DNA from: Anthoceros angustus
Taxonomy: Eukaryota; Plantae; Anthocerotophyta
Reading direction: 5' to 3'
NCBI GenBank assembly: GCA_010909165.1
Contig: VJWM01000025.1
Span: forward strand, 806,001 to 870,000
Length of the DNA: 64,000 nucleotides
Within the stretch, counting starts at the first letter, position 1; each line of letters opens with the position of its first letter. Position numbers and translations under genes: made by a program. Shown piece after piece: positions 10,380 to 39,273 of the stretch. The notes beneath the pieces were generated by a model. It had not been told where the DNA came from. It was given only the letters and a program-made list of their open reading frames with translations, and did not search any database.

Positions 10380-10414
10380 ATTCGCATGGAACTTGAAACT
10401 AAGTTAGGGCTGCA

Positions 10415-13034: not shown

Positions 13035-13265
13035 GTGATGATTATAGTAACAACCAAATATGGTATTCCAACGTGATGATTGTAGTAACAACCAAATATG
13101 GTATTCCAACGTGATGATTGTAGTAACAACCAAATATGCTATTCCAACGAGATGATTGTAGTAACAACCAAATATGATATTCTAACGTGATGATTGTAGT
13201 AACCACCAAATCTTTGGCGTTGGAGTCCGTAGTAACAACCAAATCTTTGGCGTTGGAGTCCGTAG
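13035..13265. repeat. Minisatellite: 4 x 38 bp followed by 2 x 33 bp
   Basis: (A/G)TAGTAAC unit starts at 13044, 13082, 13120, 13158, 13196, 13229, with a partial unit at 13262. Confidence 0.9.
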
Positions 13266-13835
13266 GCCTTTCTCCATACTTCCAAACTACCATGAGATGT
13301 TCCCGGTGTTGTTTGTTTGCGATCCTTTGCACCAATCTTCATCGTCCTACTCTTCTTTTTGCCCGCCATGATGTTGGCGCCTCCCCACACTGCACGAGAT
13401 TGTTGTGCGCCTCAAGAAATCCCTTGCTGAAGGTTGTCCACACCCCTCCTTCTCGTATCCGTGTTCGTTTTTGTTGCTTCTAACTTGAAACCCCGGACAT
13501 GTTTCAATTTTAAGGCACTGCACTTTTTGGTTACCTTGCACAATTTCCTTCTCACATAAACATGATAATATTTGAAGCGGCGGAATATACACAGCCTCTT
13601 CCGATATAATTGGAGCCGCTTCCAAAAAATTGCACAGTAACTAAATCACGATTTTAGCCAATTTTTGATATGAGGCAGGGGGTACTGATTTCAAGATTGA
13701 GAATCTTCATGTGTTTTCTGGTAGAAGGCCTGGGAATACTGGTGTGTGAGCGCCGGTATGTCGGCGCTCAGCCCTTGGCTTTTACTATGTCAGCGCTCTA
13801 AATTAACCTCAACTTAACTAGTATAAAAACTACAA

Positions 13836-13896
13836 CTTCGATCTCGAACTCGCGACTTATGATTCTTAGCCGGATTTTTTACCACTTTACCAACTC
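13836..13896 (-). other. Degenerate tRNA-derived (SINE-like) Pol III box pair
   Basis: A-box-like TGGTAAAGTGG and B-box-like GAGTTCGAGATC on the minus strand; no complete cloverleaf. A weaker B-box-like copy lies near 14550. Confidence 0.3.
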
Positions 13897-14047
13897 TAGG
13901 AGACAAAAGAACTTTAAGATGCGCAAATAATATATACCAATGAAGGCGCCAATATGCTAGCACCTTATGCTCTTATGTTCCCTCCATAGGGCGCCGGCAT
14001 GCCGCCGTCCTTAGATAGGTTTTTTGTGAGCGCCGGTGTGCCTGCGT

Positions 14048-14386
14048 CTACATTAACACTAGGGCTATACAACCATTTATCGTCCACCCATGCACATTAC
14101 GACTTACATACATTAGGCCATGTGTCGCTTGCTTGCGCAAGAGAATGAGAAAGAACACACCACCTTTCACACTTCCGATCATGACGCAACCTTGGTCGCT
14201 CACAAAGATAGTGTCCAACACACAAAATACATGTTCAATTGCTATGACTTCCGTAGAAAGATAGTCGCGGCTTGCACTGAGCTCGACAATAGGGAAGAAA
14301 CTTGGGCATGTCATGCCTCTCTTTACCGTTCCGATTCCCATACAATTTGAGATCATGAATATTAGGGCATGGGTAATTTCAAACAA
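14048..14386 (-). pseudogene. Possible fragment of a translational GTPase (GTPBP/EF-Tu domain II-like)
   Basis: FPIVELSA...FCVLDTIFVSDQGCVMIGSVKGG loosely resembles PIFxISxVTG...FxIDxxFxVxGxGxVxxGxVxxG. Similarity is weak and judged by eye. Confidence 0.25.
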
Positions 14387-15156
14387 TGTGCTTAGAAAAC
14401 CATTGAAATTTGAAAATAATTCTCATGATTTTGAATTCAAGACTACGAATTATTAGAATAAGGGGATTTTAAACTGAACCAATTATCCATCACTTTTATA
14501 ACACAAACTATGCTAGCCAAAATACTATGCTAGCCAAAACAAAGAAGCATGACTCGAACTTGTAACCTCAAATTTTTTTTCTCTCATTTGAAACCATATT
14601 ACCTATTCCGTAAACAGGGAAAAATTTACATTTAAAAGGCGTATGTCGGCGCCAATAGAGGTTCAAACCTAAGACCTCTTGCTTGTAGACCGCATGTCTG
14701 ACCGCTTCATTAACTTCCCTATCTGTTGAACTATTGAAGCACAAAGTACATGTTGAAATGCTGGCGCCCTCATGCCCTTATGCTCCTTTTTTTTTATAGC
14801 CTATTCGGAGAAGCAATCACATTTCAGGTGGTTTTCTAGCCATTAGCCTAGGGTGTCGGTTCAGGTAATTTCTCAGCAGAAGGAGGGTGTCTGTACGACG
14901 TCCAGCAATCATTGCCAAAGATCATGAATCTTGGGCGTTGGCATGGCACGTAGCCTTTGGGCATGACTTGGACGCTGGCATGTCGGCGCCCAGGTGTGTC
15001 ATTTACGCCGTGTGTAGGGTCTTCACACCCTCGGCTGTTGTGCACAACGATGTCGACCATGTCTGGATTGGGTGTATAGCACGAATATAGAAATAGCCGA
15101 ATGCATTCCCTTCTATGCTGCTGCAGAGATGGTCGCCCATGTTCATTTACTATTGT

Positions 15157-15640
15157 TTAACAAATCACATACACTACCGACATGAGCATCATGTCGTTAT
15201 GTTTGAGTATGGTGTCGGCCATTGATATAATCTGAAGTAATGGCTGGAACGGCTGGGCTAAGCAATCACCATTCAAATCCGCGACCACAATCTTCTTCCT
15301 TAGATAAGCCTCCTTTTCACAAAACTCTTCTATATGTGTGAAAAATTGTGCCTCAGCCACTCCTATCACCTCCACTGAATCGAATAGTTCTGATCCAACT
15401 TTGTGTCTTAAACTTTTCAACTTATTAACTATGTGAAAAGTGGATTGCTCTCCAGCGTGTGTCATTAAAGTAGTCATTGAGCATTAGTCATCTTTGTTCG
15501 ATTTCACCAAGAGTACTGATTTTCCATTCTCTTTTCTTTTTTGGTATTCTCTTTAGTAATTCACGAGTCTTCCCACTAAACATGGGTGTAAGAATGATAT
15601 GAATTTTTCCACACAATCCATCATCATTTCCTGCACTCAT
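15157..15640 (-). pseudogene. Thymidine kinase (TK1/type II) remnant, intronless
   Basis: MSAGNDDGLCGKIHIILTPMFSGKTRELLKR (P-loop, cf. GPMFSGK), a frameshift near 15535, then LMTHAG, VIGVAEAQFF (cf. IDEAQFF) and KIVVADLNGDCLAQPFQPLLQIISMAD (cf. VAGLDGDF..PF..L.LIP.AD). Confidence 0.8.
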
Positions 15641-17108
15641 GCCTTGCTCAAGCTATTACTGATGTTAGTTCATCATAGCAAAGCAAATTCTTTTGATAGT
15701 GAAAACGACGTTATTCGCTGATTTAGCTATGTTCTAAAAACACTCCCGTGACTTGTTTTATTACAAACATCGCACAAACGCGCTGGAATGCAAAATAATT
15801 CACATGATTCAATTACTTAGTTCACGCTTTAGTTTTATGTTCAATTTACAAAACTAGGAGATCGATGGGTTGCAAGATATGAACACACAAAGCTCCAAGC
15901 GTGCGAACTATCAAAAGAATGTCTAGCTCAGCACACAAGGCAATTGTATAGCATGTTCTCACCTACTTCTAAACGTCCACGTTAGCCCTTAAGCTCTATG
16001 TGAATCGTCCTCAATGTTAAGCTCCTAAACAACTTCTCGTTGGAAAACTATTCTTCTTCCAAAACTTTAGGCTCATGCACCAATTGTCTGGTCCCACTGC
16101 ACAGAGCTGTACCTTTTATGTACACCTTTCACACTTAGCATTAATCTTGCGTCTTAATCACTCTCCTAACAAGATTAGCCACCTTTCATAAAGCCTTTCA
16201 ATCTGTCAGGCTTATTCTGATAAAATTAAACATGGCTTGTCAATGACTCCTCTAGTCATGACAAGTAACAATGCAATTTATTAAGTGTACAATCTTGTTC
16301 AAGTTAGGTATTAAGGCTGTTGGTCTCAATTTCAATAAATCTGGTTGTTACTATAATCATCACATTGATTGAAATATATTTCAAGGAATAACCCAAAGAT
16401 CTACAAAATCGCATCTTGATCAGACTTATCTACTATCTACGATGCAGATGGCGCAACGAAGGACTTGTTGGCGGCAGTGGCAGGCCATCTAGAAAGGCTC
16501 ACCTATGCTATTCTCTTTGGGTGAGCAGAAAGACTTGTTGGCGGCAATGGCCGCCCATCTATAAAGGCTCACCTTTGCTTTTTTCTTTGGGTGAGTATAA
16601 GCTCAAGTAATTTAACAAGACAACATGTATATAATTAACTATAATAGGGAAGTAAAATTTTATTAAGGAAAAAAAATTAATGGGAGAAGTCCATCCATCA
16701 GAGGACAACCAAGGGGGACCCTAAGGGTCAAGGTGAAAAGGAGCAACAAAGCTCCCTACCAGAACTTAGCGACTGCGCCTACGAGCCTATAACATATATA
16801 TTGATGTTGCGGTGTGACAAAATAATGAAAGAAGTGATGACTATACAAAATGTACACTGGGATCCTTAACTCAATAACATTTATCACTTTTCATCAACAT
16901 TCAAGAAACTTCTACCCTTTATTAACACTATATATGACCCTCTACTATAAAATTTTAAAAAAAGTTGCTACAGAATATCATCATTTCCATACAAGTGATC
17001 CTTGGTTTTCAATCTTCCTTCATTGAAAATTTTTGAAGGTGTCACTTCACGGACATAGAAACAGGAAACTCCTTAGAACTTCCAGAACTTGGAAAACGGA
17101 TTGAGTCC

Positions 17109-17843
17109 ATGGCTATTACTATGACTCACACTATCAACCGTATGGGTGTAGATACGAAAAAACGTACAAAAGATGGTGAAGGTGCATGTGGCGAAATATT
17201 TAGACTGGAAAAGCATATAATTAAGGTAATGCCCATAAGAACTACAAGTGAAACTCAAAATGAGTTTATGATCGCAAAGATTTTAGCAAAACTGCAAGAC
17301 CCTAGTAATTCGTATTTCTATATGAACTTTATGATAAAAAAATGGGAAATACAATGGATGGGACCGTATTCTACTGAACTCTCTAATGCTAAGAGATCAT
17401 GGCCATGTGTTATTGATTCAATTTATCCTTTACATTATCCATATGATCAGAAATTCAAGACAGCAATGCAAGAAGATGATGGGGTATCTCTGGGAGACTT
17501 CAAATTTAAAAACTTGTCAGAATTAACAAGTACATTATTGCAAGTGATTTTAGCATTAGAGGTGGCAGAAGCAGCGTACTCTTTTGAACATCGAGATTTA
17601 CATGAGCACAATATTCTTGTATCTCGTATAGAAAATAAGAAAAGCAGTGCAAGATATTGAATAAATAACCATGAATGTTGGTCAAAACATATGGGATAAA
17701 GGTCAGAATGATCGACTTTGAAATGTCTCGACTTCTAATGGGTGCACACATTTTATTCAAGGATTGGAGTACAATGAGATTTGATCAAGAATATTCCAAC
17801 AATGCTCTTGTGACATTATGGGCTTACATGCAGAGCATAGTGT
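17109..17843 (+). pseudogene. Second Haspin-like kinase copy, disrupted and 3'-truncated
   Basis: Near-identical peptide to 11352-12419; a CGA>TGA stop at 17658, a 1-nt deletion, compensating frameshifts in the Gly-loop region; homology ends after MQSIV (~17843). Confidence 0.85.
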
Positions 17844-18262
17844 GTTCCAACGGTAGGGAGTCATCTACCATGGTACGTAAGTTACCTACCACTATAGGTA
17901 ACTTATATATAACTCCCTGTGGTGGATGTATGCCTCGTGTATAATCAACCCCCAATCTGTGGCCCTTTGCCTTAAGCTTGATCAAGTCATCCACATTCTT
18001 TTTATTGAGCTTGATCAAGTCATCAAGACTTAGATGATCACAACGTTGTCTTAGGTCCTCGAGCAACTCATAATTATTGCTTGGTCGCGAGGAATTCATT
18101 ATTGCTTGGATGTTTGTGCTCTATAATGTATTTAAAATTGGTCAATATGGATTATTTTTGTGAAAATATATTCAACCGTGGTGGTTGCTCTCAATATCCT
18201 AGGCAAATCAATTGTTAGGAGTTCTCGAGGTGGAACCGCTGCAAGGATGAGCAATTTTACCG

Positions 18263-19818: not shown

Positions 19819-22317
19819 TTAGTGAGGAACAGACCTTGCTGTTTTGACACCGGAAGGAATAGTAGCCTTGGAGGCTGGAGTTGCGGGCTGGAGACAACCT
19901 CCATCAGCCTCGATGTGCTGTGTATCCTCGACAAGGAAACTATGCAGCAACCCGTCCGTGTCTGTCCACCAGCTCTGACCTGGCTGCTTCCATGCCCCAA
20001 TTTTTGTTCTCCTTGCCTGCATCTCCTGTGCCTGCTCCCACATCTGGGCATCAGTGTATATGTTCGACATCAATGCATATGCAGCGGAATCTTTTTTGTC
20101 TAGGTTCACAGCCTCATCAAAGGCATGGCGTCCCACATCCACGTTGCTCCACTTACGAGAACCACCCAACAGAGTGTGCCAAACTGCAGCATCAGGAGGT
20201 ACAGGCATTGTCTTAACAAGAGCTAGTGCCTCATCTAGTTGTCCTGCACGACCAAACAGATCCACCATGCACGTGTAATGATCCGTTGTAGGAGTGATTC
20301 GATACTGTTCGTGCATAGCCTCAAAGTACTTGCGGCCCTTGTTCACTTGACCAGTGTGACTACACACTTTTAGCACACTAAGGAACGTAATGCCGTCTGG
20401 CTGTATGCCATCCTCTGTCATTTTAAGAACCAAGTCAAACACCTTATCACTGTCCCCTTGATGGGTGTATCCTGCAATAAGGGCACTCCAGGTGATAACA
20501 TCTCTTTTGGGCAACGCCTCAAAAACCTGCTGTGCATCAACCATACTACTGCACTTCCCATACATGCTTATCAAACTGCAGGCTACAGGCAAATCTGCTT
20601 GAAGACCTTGTTCTTTAATCTGTGCATGGAGCTGCCTTCCCATACGTAAATCTGCCAGGCTCCCACATGCCTGAAGCAGGCACACAAATGTCACTGCGTT
20701 CGGCACAACAATGCCTTCTTCTTGCATATCCCTGAAGAGGGCAAGGGCCTCCTGCCCCATGTCCTGCTGGGAATATCCTGTGATCATGGTGCTCCACGTC
20801 ACCAAATCTTTTTGAGAAAGCCCATCAAACACTCTCTGAGCATCTTCCAAGCTGCCACACTTGGCATACATGTATACCAAACCGCTGGCGATAAACACAT
20901 CGGCCTCATGTCCTCGTTCCATAATTTGTGCATGGAGCTGCTTCCCCGTCTCCAAAGCTGGTGCACCTATGCTGGAACATGCCTGGAGGAGGCACACATA
21001 GGTCACAGCATTGGGTGACACCATGCCTTCGTCTTCCATAGCCCTATACAGATGAAGGGCTTCCTGCGCCATGCCTTGATGGGAGTATCCTGCTATCATA
21101 GCACTCCATGTCACCACAGTTTTATGATCAACTCCATCAAACACGTCCCGAGCATCGTCCAGGCTGCCACACTTTGCATACATGTCTACCAAACTATTAG
21201 CTACAAATACATCAGCTTCAAGTCCGGCTTCTCTAATTCGCGCATGAAGCTGCTTACCATGGTCCAAAGCAGGTGTGCCCAGACCTGAACATGCCTGTAG
21301 GAGGCAAACAAAAGTCACTGAATCAGGTGCAACAATGCCTTCTTCTTGCATACACCTGTAGAGCTGAAGAGCTTCCTGTCCCTTGCCCTGCTGGGTATAC
21401 CCTGCAATCATTGCACTCCACACCACCACATTTTTTTTAGGAAGTCCGTCAAACACTCTCTGAGCGTGCTCCAAGCTGCCACACTTTGTATACATGTCCA
21501 CCAAGCAACTACAAACAAACAAGTCATCCTGGACGCCGCTAGCCAACACGTCAGCATGCACCTGCTGCCCAGATTCTAAATCTCCTGCCCTAGCACAAGC
21601 CTGAAGGGCTGCTACGAAAACATGGCCATCTGGCTTCACACTCGATCTGCACAGCTCATGGTACAGCTGTATGGCTTGCTTATCTTGTTTGTGTTTAACA
21701 TGCGCAGAAATTATGGCAGACCACGTAAAGGCATCTGGTTCAGTTGCCATAGTGAACACATTTCTAGCTTCTTGCAACCTGGCATGAGAAGCATACATTC
21801 GGAGGATGTGGTTGCACAGGAACGTGTCCGACTCATACCCCGTCTTCACGGTCAAAGCATGAACACGGCGACCCAGAGGCAGATCCTTGCGATCCAAACA
21901 TTCCTTTAGTACCGTGAACAAGAGGGATCTGGAGACCTCACAGCCGGTAAGCACCAGCACTCCCAGGGCATCGACAGCCTGGGGAAGCCGCCCACGCCGA
22001 CATAGTGTGCTCACGGTTTTGGGCTTTACCTCCCTTCTGCATCCTGCAGGCATCCGAGGGCTGCCATCGAGCGGCACTCTCTGCATATCCAGGGCAGCCA
22101 GCTGCGCATCCACCCAATCTGGCTTATGCACGTTGCTTGATGTAGAGGACCTCTTGGAACTCCCGATCACGGAAGTCAAGCGATGTGGAGCTTTTGTCAT
22201 CTTCACTGTTGTCCAAGCAGGAAAACTGGCTGCCACAATACGTCCTGGTGACGCCCCCCTCTGGAAGGTCCAAGAGCACACATTGAGCGGGCTGGGTTTC
22301 TTGCAAACGTGCTGCAA
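19819..22317 (-). CDS. PLS-class PPR protein A, E1-E2 with WW-type PG box and truncated DYW; degenerate PDF motif near the N-terminus
   Basis: 832-aa ORF with repeated P-L-S triplets (LVDMYAKCGSLEDA..VFD..; VTWSAMIAGY), E motifs and WKQPGQSWWTD; no HxE or CxxC. The true start may lie upstream across frameshifts. Confidence 0.9.
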   Translation of the reverse strand: MQHVCKKPSPLNVCSWTFQRGASPGRIVAASFPAWTTVKMTKAPHRLTSVIGSSKRSSTSSNVHKPDWVDAQLAALDMQRVPLDGSPRMPAGCRREVKPKTVSTLCRRGRLPQAVDALGVLVLTGCEVSRSLLFTVLKECLDRKDLPLGRRVHALTVKTGYESDTFLCNHILRMYASHARLQEARNVFTMATEPDAFTWSAIISAHVKHKQDKQAIQLYHELCRSSVKPDGHVFVAALQACARAGDLESGQQVHADVLASGVQDDLFVCSCLVDMYTKCGSLEHAQRVFDGLPKKNVVVWSAMIAGYTQQGKGQEALQLYRCMQEEGIVAPDSVTFVCLLQACSGLGTPALDHGKQLHARIREAGLEADVFVANSLVDMYAKCGSLDDARDVFDGVDHKTVVTWSAMIAGYSHQGMAQEALHLYRAMEDEGMVSPNAVTYVCLLQACSSIGAPALETGKQLHAQIMERGHEADVFIASGLVYMYAKCGSLEDAQRVFDGLSQKDLVTWSTMITGYSQQDMGQEALALFRDMQEEGIVVPNAVTFVCLLQACGSLADLRMGRQLHAQIKEQGLQADLPVACSLISMYGKCSSMVDAQQVFEALPKRDVITWSALIAGYTHQGDSDKVFDLVLKMTEDGIQPDGITFLSVLKVCSHTGQVNKGRKYFEAMHEQYRITPTTDHYTCMVDLFGRAGQLDEALALVKTMPVPPDAAVWHTLLGGSRKWSNVDVGRHAFDEAVNLDKKDSAAYALMSNIYTDAQMWEQAQEMQARRTKIGAWKQPGQSWWTDTDGLLHSFLVEDTQHIEADGGCLQPATPASKATIPSGVKTARSVPH

Positions 22318-22599: not shown

Positions 22600-23090
22600 G
22601 ATCGACGCGGTGACATGTTCCTGGACACTTGACCCTCTATCCAGTCACTGGTAACCCTTTCCCGCCACCATCCGATTCTCCGAGCATGAAGATCAGTGGG
22701 TGCAAAATCTGTTCTCACATAACACACATCAGGGTAGCCGGTGGACTGCTTTAAGATCACAGAAACAACTCAAGAACGTGGTGGTGGTGAGGGACTCGTC
22801 CGAATCCCTTCACGACCAACACTTCGTTGCGTGGTCTCCTGATATTGAATTGCCCAAATCCACCTCCGCCATTGCCTCACAAGATTAGGATCAGAGGATG
22901 GCATATCTGTTCTCACAAAACAGGGCAGCCGGTGGACTGCTTGAAGATACAGAAACAACCCAAGAACGTGATGGTGAGGAAGGACTCATCCGAGTCCCTT
23001 CACGACCAATACATCGAATCGTGATCTCCTCATCTTGGATTGCCGAAATCAACCCCCGCCAGTGGCTCACAAGGTAAGGCTTTTCTGTCG
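22600..23090 (-). repeat. ~200-bp tandem duplication upstream of PPR-A, possibly decayed PDF-motif sequence
   Basis: CCCTTCACGACCAA... near 22806 and 22996; peptides KQSTGYPDVCYVRT and DWIEGQV weakly echo the PDF consensus. Confidence 0.45.
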
Positions 23091-23519: not shown

Positions 23520-26500
23520 TCATGGTCGACTCTTACAACTGCAACAACCGTTTGCGAATCGATGCACACGGTACCCATCCCTCACAACAATGTCTCTCTG
23601 TTCAAGCCTTGACATGACCTCCGTGGAGCTGTGGCAGTCACTGCACATGCGTAGATTCTTCGTCACCACCAGAGGTGTCCCACTCGGAGTGTTCAAGAGA
23701 CCAAACGCCAGAGCTAGCTTCTCAGCATGACCACAAAGCGCATCTTCCTTTTCCTTCTCACGCAGAGGCTTCAACACCAAATTTGTGTGAGGTACGTGGC
23801 CTCCTTCCTGCTTCAGGCGTGCATTCGTGCTCTCTACCTTCAGCGCAATATCCTCTCTCCTCTCTCCCACCACAAATCTATGTACTTGCTTTTTCACCTC
23901 AATGCTCGCCACTCCAGGTTTCTTGTTAGCTCCTGCTACCATTCTCTGTGTTTCAATCCTGTCTACATCGCTCCACCTGCCTGCATCTGCGTAGGCATTG
24001 GCCATGAGCACATACGCGGGCGCCCACTGGGGGTCCAGTTTAACCAGACTATCAAAACACCACATTGCCCTCTCTAAATCCCCGTGACTTTTGCATGCAT
24101 TCAGCAAAGACGTCAACCCCACGACATTATTTTGGCCCTCACATGACAAAAACATCTTCTCAGCCTCATCTAAATGGCCTGCACGCCCAAGAAGATCAAT
24201 CATGCAATTGTAATGCTCAATAGCAGGTTTGATGGCATGCTCTTCAGCCATGGAATCAAAGTACTTGCGGCCCTTGTGGACCAGTCCCTCATGACTGCAA
24301 GCTGCTAGAAGGCATGTAAAAGTTGCACCATCAGGCTGAAAACCAGCAAATAGCATCTCCTCAAAACAAGCTAATGCTCTGTGACCATCATCACAAGTAC
24401 CATACCCAGATATCAGGGCATTCCATGTCACCACATTCCTTGTGGCCATGCTGTCAAAGACCTGGCGTGCATCTTCCAGTTCGCCGCATTTTGCATACAT
24501 GTCCACCAGGCAGTTGCCCAACACTACGTTGTCCAGCAGTCCACTTTCAACAATCTGTAAGTGCAGCTGCCTCCCCTTCTGTAAGGCACCAGTGCTTGCA
24601 CAGGCGTTCAGAAGGCAAGCAAAAGTAAAATGGTTAGCCAAAACCAGGCCCTCCTGCTCCATTTGTTCGTACACAACAAGTGCCTCATGTGCGAGCCCTT
24701 GCTGGGAATACCCAGCAATCAGCACCGTCCATGTCACCACATCCTTTGAGGCCAAGCTTTCAAACACCTGGCGTGCATCTTCCAGTTCACCACATTTTGC
24801 ATACATGTCCACCAGGCAGTTGCCCACCACATCATCCAGTCCTCTTTCAACAATCTGTGAGTGCAGCTGCCTGCCCTTCTGTAAGGCACCAGTGCTTCCA
24901 CAGGCCTTCAGAAGGCAAGCAAATGTAACATGGTCAGCCAAAATGAGGCCTCTTGCTCCATTTGTCCATACAGAAAGCGCCTCTTGGCTGACCTTGCTGT
25001 GCATACCCAGCAATCAGGGCATTCCATGTCACCACATCCTTTGTGTTCATGCTGTCAAAACCTGGCGTGCATCTTCCAGTTCACCACATTTTGCATACAT
25101 GTCCACCAGGCAGGTTGCCCACCACTACATCATCCAGCAGTCCTCTTTCCACAATCTGTGAGTGCAGCTGCCTGCCCTTCTGTAAGGCACCAGTGCACAG
25201 GCCTTCAGAAGGCAAGCAAAAGTAACATGGTTAGCCAAAATGAGGCCTCCTGCTCCATTTGTCCATACAGAAAGCGCCTCTTGGCCAAGTCCTTGCTGTG
25301 CATACCCAGCAATCAGGGCATCCATGTCACCACATCCTTTGTGCCAAGCTGTCAAAACCTGGCGTGCATCTTCCAGTTCACCACATTTTGCATACATGTC
25401 CACCAGGCAGGTGCCAACACTACGTCATCCAGCAGTCCTCTTTCCACAATCTGTGAGTGCAGCTGCCCTTCTGTAAGGCACCAGTGCTTGCACAGGCCTT
25501 CAGAAGGCAAGCAAAAGTAACATGGTCAGCCAAAATGAGGCCCTCCTGCTCCATTTGTCCATACACAACAAGCGCCTCTTGGCCAAGTCCTTGCTGTGCA
25601 TACCCAGCATCAGGGCATTCCATGTCACCACATCCTTTGTGCCAAGCTGTCAAAACCTGGCGTGCATCTTCCAGTTCACCACATTTTGCATACATGTCCA
25701 CCAGGCAGTTGCCCAACACTACGTCATCCAGCAGTCCTCTTTCAACAATCTGTGAGTGCAGCTGCCTGCCCTTCTGTAAGGCACCAGTGCTTGCACAGGC
25801 CTTCAGAAGGCAAGCAAAAGTAACATGGTTAGCCAAAATCAGCCCTCCTGCTCCATTTGTCCATACACAAGCGCCTCATGTGAGCCCTTGCTGTGCATAC
25901 CCAGCAATCAGGGCATTCCATGTCACCACATCCTTTGAGGCCAAGCTTTCAAACACCTGGCGTGCATCTTCCAGTTCACCACATTTTGAATACATGTCCA
26001 CCAGGCAGTTGCCCACCACTACATCATCCAGTAGACCTCTTTCAACAATCTGTGAGTGCAGCTGCCTGCCCCTCTGGGAGGCACCAGTGCTTCCACAGGC
26101 CTTCAGAAGGCAAGCAAATGTAACATGGTTAGCCAAAATGAGGCCGTCTTGTTCCATTTGTCCATACAGAATGAGCGCCTCTTGACCAAGACCTTGCTGT
26201 GCATACCCAGCAATCAGGGCATTCCATGTCACCACATTCTTTGTGGCCAAGCTGTCAAAACCTGCATCTTCCAGTTCACCACATTTTGCATACATGTCCA
26301 CCAGGCAGTTGCCCAACACTACGTTATCCAGCAGTCCTCTTCAACAATCTGAGTGCAGCTGCCTGCCCTTCTGTAAGGCACCAGTGCTTGCACAGGCCTT
26401 CAGAAGGCAAGCAAAAGTAACATGGTCAGCCAAAATGAGGCCCTCCTGCTCCATTTGTCCATAGAACAAGCGCCTCTTGGCCAAGCCTTGCTGTGCATAC

Positions 26501-28593
26501 CCAGCAATCAGGGCATTCCATGTCACCACATCCTTTGTGGCCATGCTGTCAAAACCTGGCGTGCATCTTCCAGTTCACCACATTTTGCATACATGTCCAC
26601 CAGGCAGTTGCCCACACTACGTTATCCAGCAGTCCTCTTCAACAATCTGTGAGTGCAGCTGCCTGCCCTTCTGTAAGGCACCAGTGCTTGCACAGGCCTT
26701 CAGAAGGCAAGCAAAAGTAACATGGTTAGCCAAAATCAGGCCCTCCTGCTCCATTTGTCCATACACACAAGCGCCTCATGTCCGAGCCTTGCTGGGCATA
26801 CCCAGCAATCAGGGCATTCCATGTCACCACATCCTTTGTGGCCAAGCTGTCAAAACCTGGCGTGCATCTTTCAGTTCGCCACATTTTGCATACATGTCCA
26901 CCAGACAGTTTCCAACAAACAAGTCGGGAGGAATGCCACTGTGCAAGACATCACAGTGCACTTTTCTGCCAGATTCCAAGTCGGAAGCAAACGCACAAGC
27001 CTGAAGGGCAGCTACAAAGACGTGACAATTCGCCTTCACTCCTGACCTACGCATCTCATGGTACAGTTGTATGGCCTCTTCAGGCTTCCCATGCTTAGCG
27101 TATGCGGAGATTATGGAAAACCACATGAAGGCATCTGGTTTGCCCACCCTGGTGAACACATCCATGGCCTCCTGCAGCCTACCTCCACATGCATACATGC
27201 GCAAGATATGGTTCCCCAAGTATGCATTGGAATCGTACCCAAGTTTAGCAGTGAGATCATGAACTCGTCGGCCCACAGCCAAATCCTTCTTAGCTGTACA
27301 CAGTTTTAACACAGCGTAAAACAGAGACGGAGGGATTGCAGAGTCTGTGTGCGCCAGAGATTCCAGGGCTCCAACGGCCTCAGAAAGCTTCCCTGCTGAC
27401 ATAACATGCTCACGGTTCCAGCCGTTACCGCCCATTTCCGATCCTGCACGCCTGCCAGGTTCAGGCCCGTGCTGGGCATACCCAGCAATCAGGGTTGTCC
27501 ATGTCACCACATTCTTTGTGGCCAAGCTCTCGAAAACCTCGCGTGCATCTTGTAATTCGCCACATTTTGCATACATCTCCACCAGGCAGGTGCCAACAAA
27601 CAAGTCAGGACGAATGCCACTGTGCAACACATCAGAGTGCACTCTTCTGCCAGATTCCAAGTCGGCAGCAAATGCACAAGCTTGAAGGGCAGCTACAAAG
27701 ACGTGAGCATCCGCCTTCACTCCTGATCTACGCATCTCATGGTACAGTTGTATGGCCTCTTCAGGCTTCCCATGTTTAGCGTATGCGGAGATTATGGAAA
27801 ACCACATGAAGGCATCTGGTTTGCCCACCCTGGTGAACACATCCATGGCCTCCTGAAGCCTACCTCCACATGCATACATGCGCAGGATATGGTTCCCCAA
27901 GTATGCATTTGCATCGTACCCAAGCTTGACAGTAAGACCATGAACTCGTCGCCCCACAACCAAATCCTTCCTATCTGTACACAGTTTTAGCACAGTGTAA
28001 AACAGAGACTGAGAAATGGCAGTTTTTGCCTGCGCCAGAGAATCCAGGGCTTCAACGGCCTCAGAAAGCTTCCCCTGCTGACACAACATGGTCACGGTTC
28101 CAGCCGTTACCATGCCCATTTCCGAACCTGCATGCCTGCCAGGTTCAGGCTTATCAGGAGAGCTCGACTTGGAAGGAGAGGCACCATGACCCATCTGCAT
28201 ATCCAAGAAAACGAGCTGCTCATCTACCCAAGCTGGCTTAAACATGCTGTGTAACCAGAGGACCTCGCCAGATCCCTTACGCAGGAAGTCAGGCGAACGG
28301 GAGCTCTTCTTGTCTCGTCTGTTGTCCCACCACATGGCGGGGTCCAAGAAAAATTGTTGCCACAAGTGCTCCTGCTCCTGCTCCTGGCGATGACCATCCT
28401 TACATCCGTGCCCACCCACACTTCTTCTCGGAAGTGGAACTGCTGGGCTCCTTACACTGCTGCACCTGATGGCTTGGTGGTTTGCTGGGTGAGGACTCCC
28501 TAAAGTGAGGTGAGCGGGAGATTCTCGTGGAATCCCTGCACACACACCAATTTGTTGGGTCCACAACGGGTCCGGTTGCCATGCTGTGGCCAT
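23520..28593 (-). CDS. PPR gene B: PDF motif - long PLS array - E1 - E2 - DYW:KP (ends SRP); frameshifts in the array are probably sequencing errors
   Basis: N-terminal ORF 26824-28593 with the PDF motif; C-terminal ORF 23520-25013 with KKPGVASIEV, CGHAEKLA, RMCSDCH, HRFANGCCSCKSRP; ~300-bp triplet repeats between them with many 1-nt deletions. Confidence 0.85.
24400..26950 (-). repeat. Tandem array of ~9 near-identical P-L-S triplets (306 bp ideal unit)
   Basis: The LVDMY codon block recurs at 24493, 24799, 25093, 25390, 25688, 25988, 26288, 26587, 26888; an intact unit is 102 aa. Confidence 0.95.
28201..28365 (-). other. OSB-type PDF motif in PPR gene B
   Basis: LWQQFFLDPAMWWDNRRDKKSSRSPDFLRKGSGEVLWLHSMFKPAWVDEQLVFLD matches the remembered OSB PDF pattern W..FF..P..WWDNR..K....PDF..K..GE.LWL....P.WV..QL..LD. 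Confidence 0.85.
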
Positions 28594-30288
28594 CGTTCAG
28601 GAACCGCTGTCGGAAGGCGAGCCAAACCACAGACTATAGCAGGATGCCGAATTAGTGTACATGGCCACTGACTGTTTTCACTCTTGCACCCAAAGGCCAA
28701 ACATGGGCACCCACCAGCACAGTATGTGAAGGATGCCAATTGCCTATTTGAACTTGGAACATGTAAGTGCTGGGCTCATGGTTGTCGCAAGAAGCTGCAG
28801 TCATAGTTCAGACTGAATTTTGAGTGAGCGCTGCTCAAGCGATGAATCTCAATTCTGGTCCAGGGTCCAGTCTGGTGGGCTTCACGTTGTTGCTGGATTT
28901 TTCTTTTGGCGGCTGAAGCTAGCTAAAATCGACAGCAGCCGAGGCGCAGTTTGGTACGTCTTTGAAGCGGAGAGCATGGCGCTAGCCTGTGATAGCCTGC
29001 TGTGGGCGTAAAATCCTGTGCCGCTTCCGGAGGCTGCCGCGGCTGGTTGTCGTGACTCGTTTGCCGAGGTTATGGTGTTGTGTGAAGGTGTTGAAGAGGT
29101 GGCAATCTGATGGAAACGAATTGCCGATGCAGATTTTGTTGGGAAATAGCCGCAATTTTGCGGGTTTTGTGCAGATTACCGTCATTCCCTACCTCGTTGT
29201 CGGGGATCCCGATCTGGACACCACTTCAACAACCTTTTTGCTGTTGGATCAACGAGGAGCGGATATTCTCTTTGGGATTGCCATACACACCCTCTGGCTG
29301 ATGACACGGATATTCAGCTCATCCCTGGTGGTAATTCTGCTGCTCTGGTCCGGCGTCGGACATTAAACACGATTCAGGTTTAGAGCAGGGTTTTGGAGGG
29401 AAGGAATGAGGTAGTGAGTGTTCGGGCTCTTTGAGGATTCACAGCTGATGTTTACGTTCTGACGATTCTGCCTTGTCCATGATGAAGGATGCCTCAACAT
29501 CTGCTTCTATCGTTTGGTAGGTGGTGTTGAACACGCCAAACACGTCTAAGGCAGGGATGGAAGCTACAGCCAATGCAACACAGTAAGTTTGATGCCTAAC
29601 CTTTCTTCACAAGCACCGAGTACCGGGATGCCCTTATACATGACTGTTATCGTATCAGAGGCACCCAATAGACGACTGACTTGCTATTTCTCCTCTACTC
29701 ATGCAGATGAGTCTCACAGCTGTGACAGGAGCTCACGAGGCTGTATCTTCAGGGTTTCGAAATCTCCTGAAAGACAGCAAGGAGATGTGTTTCAGTCCCC
29801 TACTCAAATATGAAACCCAAGCAAGAGGTTTCCAAAATCCCGGTTGGTGTTGGCTTCGGAATTTCAAAGCCAGAACATGCAACCAAGGTACTGTATGCCC
29901 CTACCTGTATTTAGTATGCCCATATCTGCAGATGTTCCTTCCATCCATTTTGTTCCTCGGACTTCTCAGTTTTTGGCCCCAGATGCGAGTCCCCAATCCT
30001 CACAGAGATGCAGCATGGAATGAACCTCAGAACAGGTTCACCTAGCAGGGTGCCCTACTATACCACTAAATTATTTCAAAGGGTTATGTATGGATTAAGC
30101 AGTGGCCTAAACAATTGCTAGTCTAACTGTATATAAGGAAGATCACCACTTATATTGTTGTCCCTTCACGAGGGAGCCCTTGGTCAGCTAGTTTGACCTA
30201 CAGCCAGGGGCGACTCCTCGGGACGTGCGTTCGGGATCGAATCCCTCATTAATCAAACGGGGGTAAGGTGACCGAAGTAAAACGCAAA

Positions 30289-30630
30289 TGAACCCTAACT
30301 AACGAACATAATTGAACTGAAATCGAACCGAAGATGAACGCAGCAACTAACGAGCATGAATGAACCGAAAATGAACCCTAACTAACGAGAGCATGAATGA
30401 ACCGAAAATGAACCCTAACTAACGAACATGAATGAACCGAAAATGAACCGAAAATGAACCCCAACTAACGAACATGAATGAACCGAAAATGAACCGAAAA
30501 TGAACCCCAACTAACGAACATGAATGAACCGAAAATGAACCCCAACTAACGAACATGAATGAACCGAAAATGAACCCCAACTAACGAACATGAATGAACC
30601 GAAAATGAACCCCAGCAATTAACGAAAATA
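30289..30630. repeat. Minisatellite of ~35-bp units (AATGAACCGAAAATGAACCCCAACTAACGAACATG) with internal sub-repeats
   Basis: Directly visible, about 9 imperfect copies. Confidence 0.9.
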
Positions 30631-30774
30631 AATGAACCAAAACAACCAAAAAGCTTTGCAGTGGACGACATTAGTCGACACGGAGAAATTCGGAACTGGA
30701 GCCGGCACGCTCCACGGTCGCCGGCGCGGCTCCCTGATGTACAAACCTGAGCAGTGGAAAGTTCTTCTCCCTTC

Positions 30775-33661
30775 TCATGGTCGACCCTTACAACTGCAAC
30801 AACCGTATGCGAATCGGTGCACACGGTATCCATCCCTTACAACAATGTGTCTTTGCTCAAGCCTTGACATGATCTCCGTGGAACTGTGGCAATCACTGCA
30901 CATGCGTAGGTTCTTCGTTACCACCAGAGGTGTTCCACTCGGAGTGTTCAAGAGACCAAACGCCAGAGCTAGCTTCTCAGCATGCCCGCAAAGCGCATCT
31001 TCCTTTTCCTTCTCACACAGTGGCTTCAACACCAACTTTGTGTGAGGTACGTGGCCTCCTTCCTGCTTCAGACGTGCATTCGTGCTCTCTACCTTAAGCG
31101 TAATATCCTCTCTTCTTTCTCCCACCAGAAATCTATGTACCTGTTTATTCACCTCAATGCTCGCCACTGCAGGTAACTTGTTAGCTCCTGCTACCATTCT
31201 CTGTGTTTCAATTCTCTCTACGTCGGTCCACCTACCTGCATCTGCGTAGGCATTGGCCATGAGCACATAAGCAGACGCCAATTGAGGGTCCAGCCTAACA
31301 ATGCTTTCAAAACACCACTTTGCCCTCTCTATATCCCCGTGACTTTTGGAGGCATTCAACAAAGACGTCAAGCCCACAACGTTATTCTGGCCCTCGCATG
31401 GTAGTAGCATCTTCTCTGCCTCATCTAATAAGCCTGCACGCCCAAGAAGATCGACCATGCAATTGTAATGCTCAATAGTAGGTTTGATGCCATGCTGTTC
31501 AGCCATGGAATCAAAATGCTTGCGACCCTCATCCACCAGTCCCTCGTGACTGCATGCCGCTAAAAGGCAAGTAAACGTTGTAACATTAGGCTGAACACCG
31601 GCAAGAGACATCTCCTCAAAACAAGCTAACGCCTTGTGACCATCATCACAACTACCATACCCAGATATCAGGGCATTCCATGTCACCACATCCTTTGTGG
31701 CCAAGCTTTCAAAAACCTGGCGTGCATCTTCCAATTCACCACATTTGGCATACATGTCCACCAAGCAGGTGCCCACCAGTATGTCACCGAGCAGTCCTAG
31801 TTCGACAATCTGCGAGTGCAGCTGCCTGCCCTTCTGTAAGGCACCAGTGCTCGCACAGGCCTTCAGAAGGCAAACAAAAGTAACACCATTAGCCACAATC
31901 AGGCCCTCCTGCTCCATTTGTCCATACAGAACAAGCGCCTCTTGGCCAGCCCTGTGCATACCCAGCAATCAGGGCATTCCATGTCACCACATTTTTGGTG
32001 GCCATGCTGTCAAAAACCCGGAGTGCATCTTTCAGCTCACCACATTTTGCATACATGTCCACAAGGGAGGTGCCCACGAGTATGTCATCCAGCAGTCCTC
32101 TTTCGACAATCTGTGAGTGCAGCTGCCTGCCCTTCTGTAAGGCACCAGTGCTTGCACAGGCCTTCAGAAGGCAAGCAAAAGTAACATGGTTAGCCAAAAT
32201 CAGGCCTCCTGCTCCATTTGTCCATACAGAACAAGCGCCTCTTGGCCAGCCCTTGCTGTGCATACCCAGCAATCAGGGCATTCCATGTCACCACATCCTT
32301 TGTGGCCATGCTGTCAAAAACCTGCATCTTCCAGTTCACCACATTTTGCATACATGTCCACAAGGGAGGTGCCCACGAGTATGTCATCCAGCAGTCCTAG
32401 CTCGACAATCTGTGAATGCAGCTGCCTGCCCTTCTGCAAAGCACCGGTGCTTGCACAGGCCTTCAGAAGACAAGCAAAAGTAACATGGTTAGCCAAAATC
32501 AGGCCTTCCAGCTCCATTTGTCCATACACAACAAGTGCCTCTTGGCTCAGCCCTTGCTGTGCATACGCAGCAATCAGGGCATTCCATGTCACCACATCCT
32601 TTGTGGCCATGCTGTCAAAAACCTGGCGTGCATCTTTCAGTTCACCACATTTTGCATACATGTCCACCAGGCAGTTGCCAACAAACAAGTCAGGAGGAAT
32701 GCCACTGTGCAACACATCACAGTGCACTTTTCTGCCAGATTCCAAGTCGGCAAATGCACAAGCTTGAAGGGCAGCTACAAAGACGTGAGCATCCGCCTTC
32801 ACTCCTGACCTACGCATCTCATGGTACAGTTGTATGGCCTCATTAGGTTTCCCATGCTTAGCATGCAGAGATTATGGAAAACCACATGAAGGCATCTGGT
32901 TTGCCTACCCTGGTGAACACATCCATGGCCTCCTGCAGCCTACCTCCACGTGCATACATGCGCAAGATATGGTTCCCCAAAAATTTATTCGACTCGTACC
33001 CAAGTTTGGCAGTGAGGACATGAACTCGTCGCCCCACAACCAGATCCTTCGTAGCTGTACACAGTTTTAGCACGGTGTAAAACAGAGACAAAGGAATAGC
33101 AGAGTCTGTCTGGGCCAGAGATTCCAGGGCTCCAACGGCCTCAGAAAGCTTCCCCTGCTGACATAACATGCTCACGGTTCCAGCTGTTACCACGCCCATT
33201 TCCGATCCTGCACCCTTTCCAGGTTCAGGCTTATCCGGAGAGCTCGACTTGGAAAGAGAGGCACCATGACCCATCTGCATATCCAAGGAAATGAGCTGCT
33301 CATCAACCCAAGCTGGCTTCAGCATGCTGTTTAACCACAGGACCTCGCCGGACCTCTTACGCCGGAAGTCAGGCGAACGGGAGCTCTTCTTATCTCGTCT
33401 GTTGTCCCACCACGAGGTAGGGTCCAGGAAAAATTGTTGCCACAAGTGCTCCTGCTCCTGTCGACGACCATCACGGGAAGATCCGTCCCCTCCCACACAT
33501 TTTCTTGGAAGAGGAATTGCTGGGCTCCTTTCACTGCTGCGCTTGGAGGCTTGGTTAGGTTGACTCCCTGAAGTGAGGTGAGCAGAAGCTCCGACTAGCG
33601 TCCCTGGACACACACCAAATTGTTGAGTCCACAACGGGTCCGGTTGCCATACTGTGGCCAT
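30775..33661 (-). CDS. PPR gene C: PDF motif - PLS array - E1 - E2 - DYW:KP (GRP type); several 1-nt frameshifts
   Basis: ORF pieces 32858-33661, 32314-32817, 31889-32272, 30775-31968; C-terminus NKLPAVASIEV...CGHAEKLA...RMCSDCH...HRFAYGCCSCKGRP. Confidence 0.88.
33281..33445 (-). other. OSB-type PDF motif in PPR gene C
   Basis: LWQQFFLDPTSWWDNRRDKKSSRSPDFRRKRSGEVLWLNSMLKPAWVDEQLISLD. Confidence 0.85.
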
Positions 33662-35400: not shown

Positions 35401-37530
35401 TTGCATCCATATGAGGAGCCAGTGGTTCTGCAAGCCATGGCTGTCTGCAGCTTTGCAATTCAATCATGCCAAGCACAACATGACCCGTTGGGGATACATT
35501 CTCTCTGGACGCAACGAAGTGGTCTAGGAAGAGCTCCTGATGACCTGATTTCATGGAATAAGCCATTAGAAAATTACGAAGCCGCGAGGTGCAGCACCTT
35601 CACAGGAAAGCCAACTCGTCCAGTAGGGTGTCTGGCTGGACCCGGATCCAGCGTGGGTAGCATCCTGGAACTTTTGTATTCGCAGCTCGCTCCTCTGGAC
35701 ACGTATCATGACTCTGGCAGGCCTGCAGGATCCGTTATAGCTGAAACTGTGAGCAAACTATGTCGGCAGGGGAAGCTCACTGAGGCTGTTGATGCTCTGG
35801 GAGCTCTGGTACACACGAAGAGTCATATCTCCCAATCCCTCTTTTACACGGTATTCAAGGAGTGTGTGGCTAAGAAAGACTTGTGTCTGGGTCGCCGTGT
35901 TCATGCTCTCATGGTGAAGACGGGGTATGAGTCGGACACGTTTCTGTGCAATCACATTCTACGAATGTATGCTTCTCATGCCATGTTGCAAGAAGCTTTG
36001 GATGTCTTTGCCATGGTTTCAAAACCCGATGCATTCACGTGGTCCGCTATGATATCCGTGCTCGTTAAACATGGACAGGATAAGCAGGCCGTACAACTGT
36101 ATCGTGGGATGCGCAGGTCAAGTGTGAAGCCAGATGGCCATGTGTTTGTAGCAGCCCTTCAGGCTTGTGCAAGGGGAGCAGACTTGGAATCTGGGCAGCA
36201 GGTGCATGCTGATATTATGGCTACTGGAGTTGAGCCTGACATGTTTGTCTGTAGCTGCTTGGTGGACATGTATGCAAAGTGTGGCAGTTTGGAAGAGGCT
36301 CAAAGAGTCTTCGACGGGCTTCCTAAAAGAGATGTGGTGACATGGAATGCCATGATAGCAGGATATGCCCAGAAGGGCATGGGTCTGGAGTCCCTTCGTC
36401 TGTATAGTTGTATGCAAGAAGAAGGTATGACTGCACCCAGTTCTGTAACATTCGTGTGCCTCCTGCAGGCATGTGCAAGTTTGGGCAACCAAGTGTTGGA
36501 ACAGGGTAAGCAGCTTCATGCACATATTAGAGAACGAGGACTTGAAGCTGATGTAGTTGTCGGTGGGAGCCTGGTAAACATGTATGCAAAGTGTGGGAGC
36601 CTAGAGGATGCTCGCGGCGTGTTTGATGGACTTGGTCAGAAGAATGTCGTGACGTGGAATACCATGATAGCACGTTATTCCCAGCAGAACATGGGGCATG
36701 AAGCCCTTGGTCTCTACAGGGCTATGCAAGAAGAAGGCATTGTAGCCCTGGATTGTGTGACGTTTGTGTGCCTTCTTCATGCATGTGAAAGTGTGGCAGC
36801 TTTGCAATTGGGACGGCAGCTTCATGCACAAATCAAAGATCAAGGGCTACAAGCTGATACTACTGTCGGGAACAGTTTGATAAATATGTATGCAAAACTG
36901 GGGAGCATGGTCGATGCACAGCAGGTGTTTGATGTGTTGCCGGAAAGAAATATCCTCACCTGGAGTGCACTGATTGCAGGTTACGCCCGTCAAGGAGACA
37001 GTGGTGTGGTTTTCGACTTGTTTCTCAGAATGGGCAAGGCTGGCATACAACCAGACGGAGTCACTCTTCTTAGTGTTCTGACAGTATGCAGTCATACGGG
37101 TCAGGTGACCAAGGGGCAACAGTACTTTGAGGCTATGAGCAAGCACTACGGCATCACTCCCACAGTGGATCACTACACATGCATGGTGGATCTCCTAGGT
37201 CGCGCTGGACGACTGGAAGAAGCACTAGGTTTTGTAAGGACAATGCCTGTAAGGCCTGATGCTGCAGTGTGGCACACTCTTCTGGGTTCTTGTAGAAAGT
37301 GGACCAATGTGGAGGTGGGACGTCATGCTTTCGATGCAGCAGTGAAGCTAGACAAGCAAGATGCCTCAGCATACATCTTGATGTCGAACATATATACTGG
37401 TGCTCAGATGTGGGAGCAGGCAGAGGAGATGCAAGCAAGAAGAGTAACCCTCGGGGCGTGGAAGCAGCCGGGGCAGAGCTGGTGGACAGACATGGACGGA
37501 TTGGTGCATAGCTTTTTCAGCTGGGGATAA
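35401..37530 (+). CDS. PLS-class PPR protein E, WW-type, truncated DYW; paralogue of PPR-A
   Basis: 709-aa ORF ending WKQPGQSWWTDMDGLVHSF. Removing one T from the T5 run gives HSFSAGDNKHP, so the end is probably E+-like. No HxE or CxxC downstream. Confidence 0.92.
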   Translation: MHPYEEPVVLQAMAVCSFAIQSCQAQHDPLGIHSLWTQRSGLGRAPDDLISWNKPLENYEAARCSTFTGKPTRPVGCLAGPGSSVGSILELLYSQLAPLDTYHDSGRPAGSVIAETVSKLCRQGKLTEAVDALGALVHTKSHISQSLFYTVFKECVAKKDLCLGRRVHALMVKTGYESDTFLCNHILRMYASHAMLQEALDVFAMVSKPDAFTWSAMISVLVKHGQDKQAVQLYRGMRRSSVKPDGHVFVAALQACARGADLESGQQVHADIMATGVEPDMFVCSCLVDMYAKCGSLEEAQRVFDGLPKRDVVTWNAMIAGYAQKGMGLESLRLYSCMQEEGMTAPSSVTFVCLLQACASLGNQVLEQGKQLHAHIRERGLEADVVVGGSLVNMYAKCGSLEDARGVFDGLGQKNVVTWNTMIARYSQQNMGHEALGLYRAMQEEGIVALDCVTFVCLLHACESVAALQLGRQLHAQIKDQGLQADTTVGNSLINMYAKLGSMVDAQQVFDVLPERNILTWSALIAGYARQGDSGVVFDLFLRMGKAGIQPDGVTLLSVLTVCSHTGQVTKGQQYFEAMSKHYGITPTVDHYTCMVDLLGRAGRLEEALGFVRTMPVRPDAAVWHTLLGSCRKWTNVEVGRHAFDAAVKLDKQDASAYILMSNIYTGAQMWEQAEEMQARRVTLGAWKQPGQSWWTDMDGLVHSFFSWG

Positions 37531-37825: not shown

Positions 37826-39273
37826 GGGTTTAGGGTTATGCACAACAAGGACTCGGCCAAGAGGCCCTTGTTCTGTATGGACAAATGCAGCGAGAAGCCC
37901 TGATTAACTGCCTGGTGGACATGTATGCCAAATGTGGTGAACTGGAAGAAGCACGCCAGGTTTTTGACAGCATGGCCAAAAAGGATGTAGTGACATGGAC
38001 TGCTCTGATATCTGGGTATGGAAAATGTGGTGAACTGAAAGATGCACGCCTGCTTTTTGACAGCATGCACACAAAGACTGTGGTAACATGGAATGCCCTG
38101 ATGGCTGGGTATGCCGAGGAAGGGCTCGGACATGAGGCGCTTGTTCTGTATGGACAAATGGAGGAGGCGGGTCTGATTTTGGCTAACCATGTTACTTTTG
38201 CTTGCCTTCTGGAGGCCTGTGGACGCACTGGTGCCTTACAGAAGGGCAGGGAACTTCACTCACAGATTGTCAGAAGAGGACTGTTGGATGACACACTGGT
38301 GGGCACCTGCCTGGTGGACATGTATGCAAATAATGGTGAATTGGAAGACGCACGCCAGGTTTTTGACAGCGTGAACACAAAGGATGTGGTGACATGGAAT
38401 GCCCTGATATCTGGGTATGGTACTTGTGATGAAGGTCATAAGGCACTTGCTTGTTTTGAGGAGATGTTGTTTGCTGGTATTCAGCCTAATGATGTTACTT
38501 TTACTTGCCTTTAGTAGCATGCAGTCATGGGGGACTGGTCTACGACCGTCGCAAGCACTTTGATTCCATGACTGAACAGCAAGGCATCAAACCTACTCTT
38601 GAGCATTATAATTGCATGATTGTTCTTCTTGGGCGTGCAGGCCATATAGATGAGGCAGAGAAGAAGCTATTGTTATGTGAGAGCCAAGGTAATGTTGTGG
38701 GCTTGACATCTGTGTTGAATGCCTGTAAAAGTCACTGCGATATAGAGAGGGTGATGTGGTGTTTTGAAAGCATTGTTAGGCTGGACCCCCAGCAGGCGTC
38801 CGCATATGTTCTTATGGCCAATGCCTATGCAGATGTAGGCAGGTGGACCCATGTAGACAGGATTGAAGCACAGAGAACAGTGGCAGGAGCTAACAAGAAA
38901 CCTGCAGTGGCGACCATTGAGTTGAACAAGCAGGCACATAGATTTTTGGTGGGAGAAAGGAGAGAGGATATTGCTCTCAAGGTAGAGAGCACGAATGCAC
39001 GTCTGAAGCAGGAAGGAGGCTGCGTACCGCACACAAAGTTGGTGTCGAAGCCAATGTCTGAGAAGGAAAAGGAAGATGTGCTTTGTGGGCATGCTGAGAA
39101 GCTAGCTCTGGCGTTTGGTCTCTTGAACACTCCGAGTGGGACACCTCTGGTAGTGACGAAGAATCTACACATGTGCGGTGACAATGGTTGAACAGAGAGA
39201 TATCGTTGTAAGGGATGGGTACCGTCTGCATCGATTCTCATCTGGCTTTTGTAGTTGCAAGGGTCGACCGTGA
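37826..39273 (+). pseudogene. PPR-DYW:KP pseudogene F, 5'-truncated, CxxC region deleted
   Basis: Starts mid-P motif; frameshift near 38510; KKPAVATIEL and CGHAEKLA present; a deletion after MCGD removes the CH..EIMSRL segment; GRP end visible in another frame (AAGGGTCGACCGTGA). Confidence 0.8.

Follow-up and report, generated by a model that had tools for sequence, protein, structure and literature searches.

A young array of P-L-S cassettes in a DYW:KP-type editing-factor gene of the hornwort Anthoceros angustus, frame-broken as assembled

How does a gene for an RNA-editing factor come to carry eight almost identical coding cassettes, six of them out of frame as assembled? The question is raised by a stretch of 64,000 nucleotides of the hornwort Anthoceros angustus (GenBank assembly GCA_010909165.1, contig VJWM01000025.1, positions 806,001 to 870,000 of the forward strand), here called the window, whose own positions are used throughout. 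The cassettes belong to gene A, a pentatricopeptide repeat (PPR) gene of the PLS class. The original prediction, made from the letters of the window, had described them as a TALE-like array in which near-identical units toggle at the codons that set the recognized base. The explanation that we consider likely as a whole is a young amplification in a gene for an editing factor of the U-to-C type, with a frame broken by assembly errors. The amplification itself is real and recent, an ordinary event within a gene of a known family; a generator of specificities is not demonstrated by it.

Anatomy and family of gene A

From its start ('MAT.WQPDPLWTQQ', common to the neighbouring paralog B) to its stop codon at 23520-23522, gene A comprises an N-terminal leader, a head that occurs twice, eight P-L-S units and an intact P2-L2-S2-E1-E2-DYW tail (Table 1). 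As assembled, it consists of six open stretches, the splitting being done by frameshifts within the array, which is untranslatable in this state. The Pfam domains matched in it are PPR, PPR_1, PPR_2, PPR_3, E_motif (E = 1e-13) and DYW_deaminase (E = 3.6e-33). The head duplication (26831-28200, minus strand) covers a non-PPR linker and six PPR motifs, with 93% identity between the copies. Its junction cuts a P motif after 15 residues, and a 2-bp and a 1-bp deletion in head copy 2 cause about 13 codons to be misread, with the frame staying open. The leaders of genes A (28250-28330) and B (33320-33400), both on the minus strand, contain a conserved 'SRSPDF.RK.SGEVLW' stretch. A non-coding tandem repeat (190 bp, 1.8 copies; 22723-23073) lies just downstream of the gene A stop codon.

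Table 1 Features of gene A and neighbouring PPR genes in the window; the border between the leader and head copy 1 is approximate
Feature	Position	Strand	Description	Basis
Gene A	23520-28593	-	Whole PLS-class PPR-DYW:KP gene	Open reading frame list, Pfam matches, tblastn map of the window
N-terminal leader	28201-28593	-	Not PPR; 'SPDF...G.VLW' motif	Translation; alignment with paralog B
Head copy 1	27511-28200	-	First PPR motifs to S motif, plus 15 P-motif codons	681-bp-spaced direct repeat; alignment
Head copy 2	26831-27510	-	In-frame 681-bp intragenic duplication of the head	Alignment
Unit 1	26530-26830	-	301 bp; codes P N/N, L A/N, S N/D; five deletions	
Unit 2	26236-26529	-	294 bp; codes P N/D, S N/N; seven deletion events	
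Unit 3	25930-26235	-	306 bp, in frame; 10 private substitutions, zero indels	
Unit 4	25632-25929	-	298 bp; nearest is unit 1 (1.4% different)	
Unit 5	25334-25631	-	298 bp; nearest is unit 2 (2.1% different); S5 is T	
Unit 6	25036-25333	-	298 bp; nearest is unit 5 (2.4% different); sole 1-bp insertion of the array	
Unit 7	24741-25035	-	295 bp; chimera	
Unit 8	24435-24740	-	306 bp, in frame, most divergent; codes P T/N, S N/N	
P2-L2-S2-E1-E2	23922-24434	-	Terminal motifs, intact	Pfam E_motif match; translation
DYW:KP domain	23523-23921	-	133 residues	Translation compared with published definitions
Paralog B	30775-33661	-	PPR-DYW:KP gene ending GRP; own array of 301 bp x 3.4 at 31656-32679, also frame-broken	
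Copy C	37885-39270	+	True pseudogene; no N-terminus, 1-bp deletion near 38510, 26-bp deletion near 39185	
E-type PLS PPR gene	19819-22317	-	Intact; in the cluster of gene A	
Second E-type PLS PPR gene	35401-37530	+	Intact; 57-62% identical to the first	

Gene A has the tandem P-L-S triplets, the E1 and E2 motifs and the DYW deaminase domain with HxE...CxxC that characterize PLS-class editing factors; an uninterrupted reading frame, which also belongs to this class, is lacking in the assembled sequence. The deaminase domain carries K1-P2, H65-A66-E67, K88, M92 and C93..C96-H97 (CSDCH at 93-97). It starts with K-P-G-V-A, compared with L-P-A-V-A in paralog B and PG.SW in PG-type controls. The triplet HAE is present in genes A and B and HSE in four of the five controls, the fifth, a fern protein ending GDMF, having HAE. 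Alanine (or cysteine) after the zinc-binding histidine is a criterion for DYW:KP domains (PMC11845758), and K88 and M92 of gene A stand at exactly the published numbering (PMC9478123, PMC11845758). There is no xHP: the 133-residue domain shows a four-residue gap relative to the controls (three relative to the fern protein), and the extra residues at the gap are HPQ or HQQ in the DYW- and GYW-ending controls. Gene A has glutamate at the K103 position, with 'STE' common to the GRP-type protein P0013. The C-terminus reads SRP in gene A, one residue off the name-giving triplet, and GRP in paralog B.

Among 5.8 billion proteins, the nearest relative is P0013, which is 59% identical, ends GGRP and has a domain starting KPAVA; further close relatives have the GDRH end of the second hornwort subgroup. 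The same protein, or one from the same species, was sought in this collection and not found, the 59% match being the best. With the hornwort GRP-type DYW:KP proteins, gene A has in common the PLS array, E1-E2, a 133-residue domain, KP, HAE, K88, M92, the absence of xHP, glutamate at the K103 position and the ...RP end. It differs from them in having KPGVA instead of KPAxA and SRP instead of GRP, and in contrast to the divergent triplets of P0013, it has eight near-identical triplets and a duplicated head. By all sequence criteria tested, gene A is a member of the GRP subgroup of hornwort DYW:KP proteins, and the type of editor proposed originally agrees with its domain, which is of the U-to-C-associated KP type. 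U-to-C activity has been assayed only for designer consensus KP proteins (PMC9478123), and the activity of the natural ones is described as unknown (PMC11845758). For the gene A product we infer U-to-C activity, an RNA target and a possible adaptive value of its toggling residues from the sequence.

The cassettes and their RNA-reading residues

In the output of Tandem Repeats Finder, the array is one entry at 24401-26917 (period 300, 8.4 copies, 89% matches, 4% indels, score 3926). The V-V-T-W codons with which P motifs start lie on the minus strand at 26830, 26529, 26235, 25929, 25631, 25333, 25035, 24740 and 24434, and delimit eight head-to-tail P-L-S triplets spanning 26830-24435. The near-identity of the units in DNA, as originally described, is confirmed. 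A full unit has 306 bp, or 102 codons, with P, L and S motifs of 36, 35 and 31 residues. By substitutions, units 1-7 differ from one another by 1.4-8.3%, and unit 8 differs from the others by 7-15%. The closest pairs are 1-4, 2-5 and 5-6 (Table 1), followed by 3-7 (4.4%), and units 1-2-3 thus resemble 4-5-(6)-7 in a mosaic kinship. Unit 7 joins a P part of the young-unit type, with three deletions, to an L-S part of the unit-3 type, whose only loss is an in-frame one of 6 bp. The mosaic is compatible with unequal crossover or conversion, the processes that had been proposed for the array, and the chimeric unit fits them as well.

The RNA-reading residues were read by a gap-aware, codon-by-codon translation, in which broken codons are marked x. 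In units 1-8, the P motif ends in N,D,N,N,D,N,D,N (AAC or GAC), exactly the series given in the original prediction, which had correctly recognized the toggle and misplaced its codon by about five bases; the codon lies at 26727-26725 in unit 1 and at 24635-24633 in unit 8. In the same order, the last residue is N,N,D,D,D,D,D,N in the L motif and D,N,D,D,D,D,D,N in the S motif. Residue 5 of the P motif is N in units 1-7 and T in unit 8. Residue 5 of the S motif (S5) is N, except for T in unit 5 and an ambiguous state in unit 6, due to the 1-bp insertion there. The D/N switch at the end of the S motif and the N/T switch at position 5 of the P motif had likewise been noticed beforehand. All toggles of last residues are single A/G changes, and every unit of genes B and C has threonine at S5, as unit 5 does. 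In the PPR code, asparagine at position 5 specifies a pyrimidine, and the last residue selects U (Asp) or C (Asn) (PMC12733224). With Asn at position 5 and an Asn/Asp alternation at the end, the toggles therefore switch between U and C. Hypermutable CpG sites were considered as their cause and discarded, none of the three toggling A/G sites being in a CpG.

Variation is concentrated in the code codons, with a Fisher p of about 0.003-0.04 overall. Across all units, five of the six code codons and 24 of the 96 others vary (Fisher p = 0.007); among the six youngest units, the figures are 4/6 and 10/96 (p = 0.003), and the enrichment has p = 0.012 to 0.09 if only sites with the minor state in at least two units are counted. 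This comparison had been named as a test of the array's nature, and because the code codons are enriched among the variable ones, they do not behave like other sites. The N/D series itself is largely a copied three-unit block (N-D-N, N-D) and not the outcome of many independent toggles, because the closest relatives mostly share the same P-last state. A handful of point changes, together with duplication and recombination, suffices to explain it. From the P and S motifs of units 1-8, the predicted target is a repeated pyrimidine-N-pyrimidine pattern, in which one S motif reads a purine and one P motif reads A. In terms of the code, the P and S positions give approximately the string U | C.U U.C C.U C.U U.G (C/U).(U/G) U.U A.C | U.C.

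Assembly error or decay as the source of the frame breaks

The frame breaks can be read in two ways. Either the approximately 30 small indels are real and gene A is a true pseudogene, a decaying member of a fast-turnover PPR cluster, or they were introduced by the assembly. Decay would account directly for the six frameshifted units, and it finds company in the window: copy C is certainly dead, and in paralog B, too, the frame is broken both in the array and in the head.

The composition and distribution of the indels argue against decay. The six youngest units contain 29 deletions and one insertion against 10 private substitutions, a ratio of about 3:1, whereas natural mutation produces far fewer indels than substitutions (about 1:5 to 1:10). 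Indels are absent from units 3 and 8, which are older and have 10 and 19 private substitutions, respectively (29 together). All 14 unambiguous 1-bp deletions are in homopolymers (runs of at least two identical bases), where 47% would be expected. A further deletion leaves a T4 run in five units and in head copy 2; the paralog units read T5 in GTT TTT GAC, and the place in the head reads GTT TTC in head copy 1 and GTT TTT in paralog B. One 5-bp deletion recurs identically in gene A (unit 2) and paralog B (unit 1), and this recurrence across genes fits a context-specific error.

Indel density, moreover, rises with similarity to other copies, the reverse of what age-dependent decay would give. 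In segments of about 100 bp, 31 indels fall in the 20 whose nearest copy is at most three substitutions away and four in the other 13 (Mann-Whitney p = 0.0005; Spearman -0.47, p = 0.006). The C-termini of genes A and B, about 89% alike, have no indel in 1,824 bp, and the three heads, 93-95% alike, have five. No nonsense substitution occurs in 816 codons. The C-terminus beside the array (1.2 kb) is intact and, compared with its counterpart in paralog B, has evolved under purifying selection. A decayed pseudogene accumulates disabling changes of all kinds with age; those of gene A are homopolymer deletions in the youngest and least unique segments, with nonsense changes absent. A stop codon seen in unit 4 was an alignment artefact that disappeared upon realignment with the paralog units. 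Programmed frameshifting and introns were rejected as causes because the breaks are scattered, unit-specific and located in homopolymers.

Published hornwort genomes were assembled from Nanopore R9 reads and polished with Pilon (PMC8075897), and short-read mapping and polishing are unreliable in repeats (PMC10095996). We consider it quite likely that the frame-breaking deletions are uncorrected long-read assembly errors, as a caveat to the original prediction had suspected from scattered deletions typical of unpolished reads; the homopolymer bias, the excess of indels and their dependence on similarity all point this way.

Several observations weigh against this explanation. Deletions common to two units are always in neighbours (1-2, 4-5, 6-7), which a purely context-driven model of error does not predict and which local conversion would give. 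Several deletions are 4-6 bp long, large for consensus errors. Decay does occur in this cluster, because copy C, with its 26-bp deletion, is a true pseudogene. The artefact status of the deletions was judged from the assembled sequence. The predicted target is of low complexity, so that binding in shifted registers would be allowed, and the P motif interrupted by the duplication of the head (681 bp) would be unusual in a functional protein. The low-complexity target and the interrupted head make us doubt that the array in its present form has finely tuned binding; the expansion may be very recent and perhaps nearly neutral. Separately, we note that the adjacent pairs joined by shared deletions do not match the pairs joined by substitutions (1-4, 2-5, 5-6, 3-7), a mismatch explained neither by error nor by decay. 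On balance, we regard decay as unlikely and consider gene A to be probably intact in the organism.

A further possibility is that the assembly misrepresents the number or order of units, with fewer or more of them in reality and some variants being consensus noise. Near-identical 300-bp repeats are hard to assemble, and the consensus quality of this stretch is visibly low. All eight units are nevertheless distinct by substitutions, with a minimum of about four differences (units 1 and 4), the array is only 2.5 kb and easily spanned by single long reads, and the code toggles are substitutions, not indels. We find an artefact of copy number or unit order very unlikely.

Growth of the array, its analogues and its surroundings

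The synonymous divergence (dS) of the closest units is about 0.016. Between the C-termini of genes A and B, dS is 0.34 and the ratio of nonsynonymous to synonymous divergence (dN/dS) is 0.185, indicating long-term purifying selection. Compared with this distance between the C-termini, that between the gene A units and unit 2 of gene B is smaller (dS of about 0.12), suggesting exchange between the two arrays. Among the young units themselves, dN/dS is about 0.6-1.2 on three to five changes and hence uninformative.

Taken together, gene A is most likely a nuclear, hornwort-type gene for a PLS-class PPR editing factor with a C-terminus of the GRP subgroup of DYW:KP, and recent unequal crossover between P-L-S cassettes of 306 bp probably lengthened its RNA-reading tract. 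This growth most likely involved the duplication of a three-unit block, followed by one more unit duplication and at least one out-of-register recombination. The cassettes combine a near-constant scaffold with differences placed preferentially at the fifth and last motif residues. The frame-breaking deletions are most probably long-read errors that short-read polishing failed to remove where the cassettes are too alike. If the deletions are artefactual, the gene would probably be open, with an unusually long array of about 39 PPR motifs. Its protein would then be targeted to an organelle, where the PPR tract, with one nucleotide to each motif, would bind the RNA upstream of the edited base, and the DYW:KP domain would convert U to C.

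We compared gene A with three further known systems. Restorer-of-fertility-like (RFL) genes are clustered paralogs with motif duplication by unequal crossover and the highest diversity at positions 5 and last (PMC5075784). Gene A resembles these P-class PPR clusters in having clustered paralogs that exchange sequence, in the duplication or insertion of whole motifs and in the location of diversity. The RFL proteins differ from it in being P-class proteins of seed plants that lack a deaminase domain and act on transcripts of cytoplasmic male sterility, whereas gene A is a hornwort-type editing-factor gene with a 306-bp P-L-S unit. The TAL effectors of Xanthomonas likewise have near-identical tandem repeats, a two-residue code of one repeat to one base and arrays remodelled by recombination. 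They are bacterial proteins of an unrelated fold that target DNA; gene A, for its part, has 24 variable non-code codons, and the L motif of its triplets adds little to the known code. The resemblance is one of design and not of descent. Designer editors of the dsn3PLS-DYW type are built as (P1-L1-S1)n-P2-L2-S2-E1-E2-DYW, with specificity set at the fifth and last residues (PMC12733224). They share with gene A a constant, consensus-like triplet scaffold repeated n times; they are synthetic and have three triplets, whereas gene A is natural and has eight, with a KP-type domain. A literature search for natural arrays of near-identical PLS triplets, or for intragenic triplet duplication in editing factors, gave only the RFL precedent and general reviews, a weak negative, with the two main DYW:KP surveys outside its coverage.

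The TALE-like description thus holds for the near-identical units and the enriched code codons; it is less apt in that few independent toggles are needed and 24 non-code codons vary too. The rapid reprogramming of specificity that had been offered as the array's function is not demonstrated; the pattern may just as well be a side effect of ordinary repeat turnover. In a broader form, hornwort DYW:KP genes might maintain intact young cassette arrays at several loci, shuffled within and between paralogs and with Asn/Asp and Asn/Thr toggles, as a fast source of U-to-C specificities and an RNA-side counterpart of TAL effectors; we think this improbable. That the array of gene A is a dedicated generator, with shuffling and toggling maintained for new organellar editing sites, is the least probable reading, and very much so: it can draw on the code-codon enrichment, the mosaic genealogy, the S5 threonine that unit 5 has in common with paralog B, suggestive of gene-to-gene exchange, and the low dS to unit 2 of that gene, but it is opposed by the small number of toggles needed, the variable non-code codons, the uninformative dN/dS of the young units, and the facts that positions 5 and last are highly variable in any PPR family and that motif duplication by unequal crossover is known from RFL genes (PMC5075784).

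If the array is open, the gene would encode a natural counterpart of the synthetic (P1-L1-S1)n editors, with a constant scaffold varying mainly at the code residues and a U-to-C-type domain at its end. Such a protein would show how editing-factor specificities originate in hyper-editing plants and would offer a natural scaffold for the design of U-to-C editors. On the technical side, near-identical coding repeats in this assembly probably carry uncorrected homopolymer deletions, and PPR genes with young arrays would therefore be miscalled as pseudogenes or split gene models.

Gene A belongs to a cluster of PPR genes (Table 1). The 26-bp deletion of copy C removes its CxDCH zinc motif. Beyond this copy, further fragments extend to 40581, with an extra DYW fragment at 40354-40581. 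Both E-type genes end in a PG-type box (KQPGQSW) with a truncated DYW domain. They stand in inverted orientation on either side of the DYW:KP genes, an arrangement resembling a head-to-head duplication of a pair of one E-type and one KP-type gene. Non-coding tandem repeats with 46- and 81-bp units occupy 30286-30642, just downstream of the gene B stop codon. An AT-rich stretch at 8000-18000 has a G+C content of 37-41%, compared with about 50% in the PPR cluster; the listing for this stretch includes short tandem repeats at 13030, 16458, 18252 and 18629 and an open frame of 355 codons at 11352-12419.

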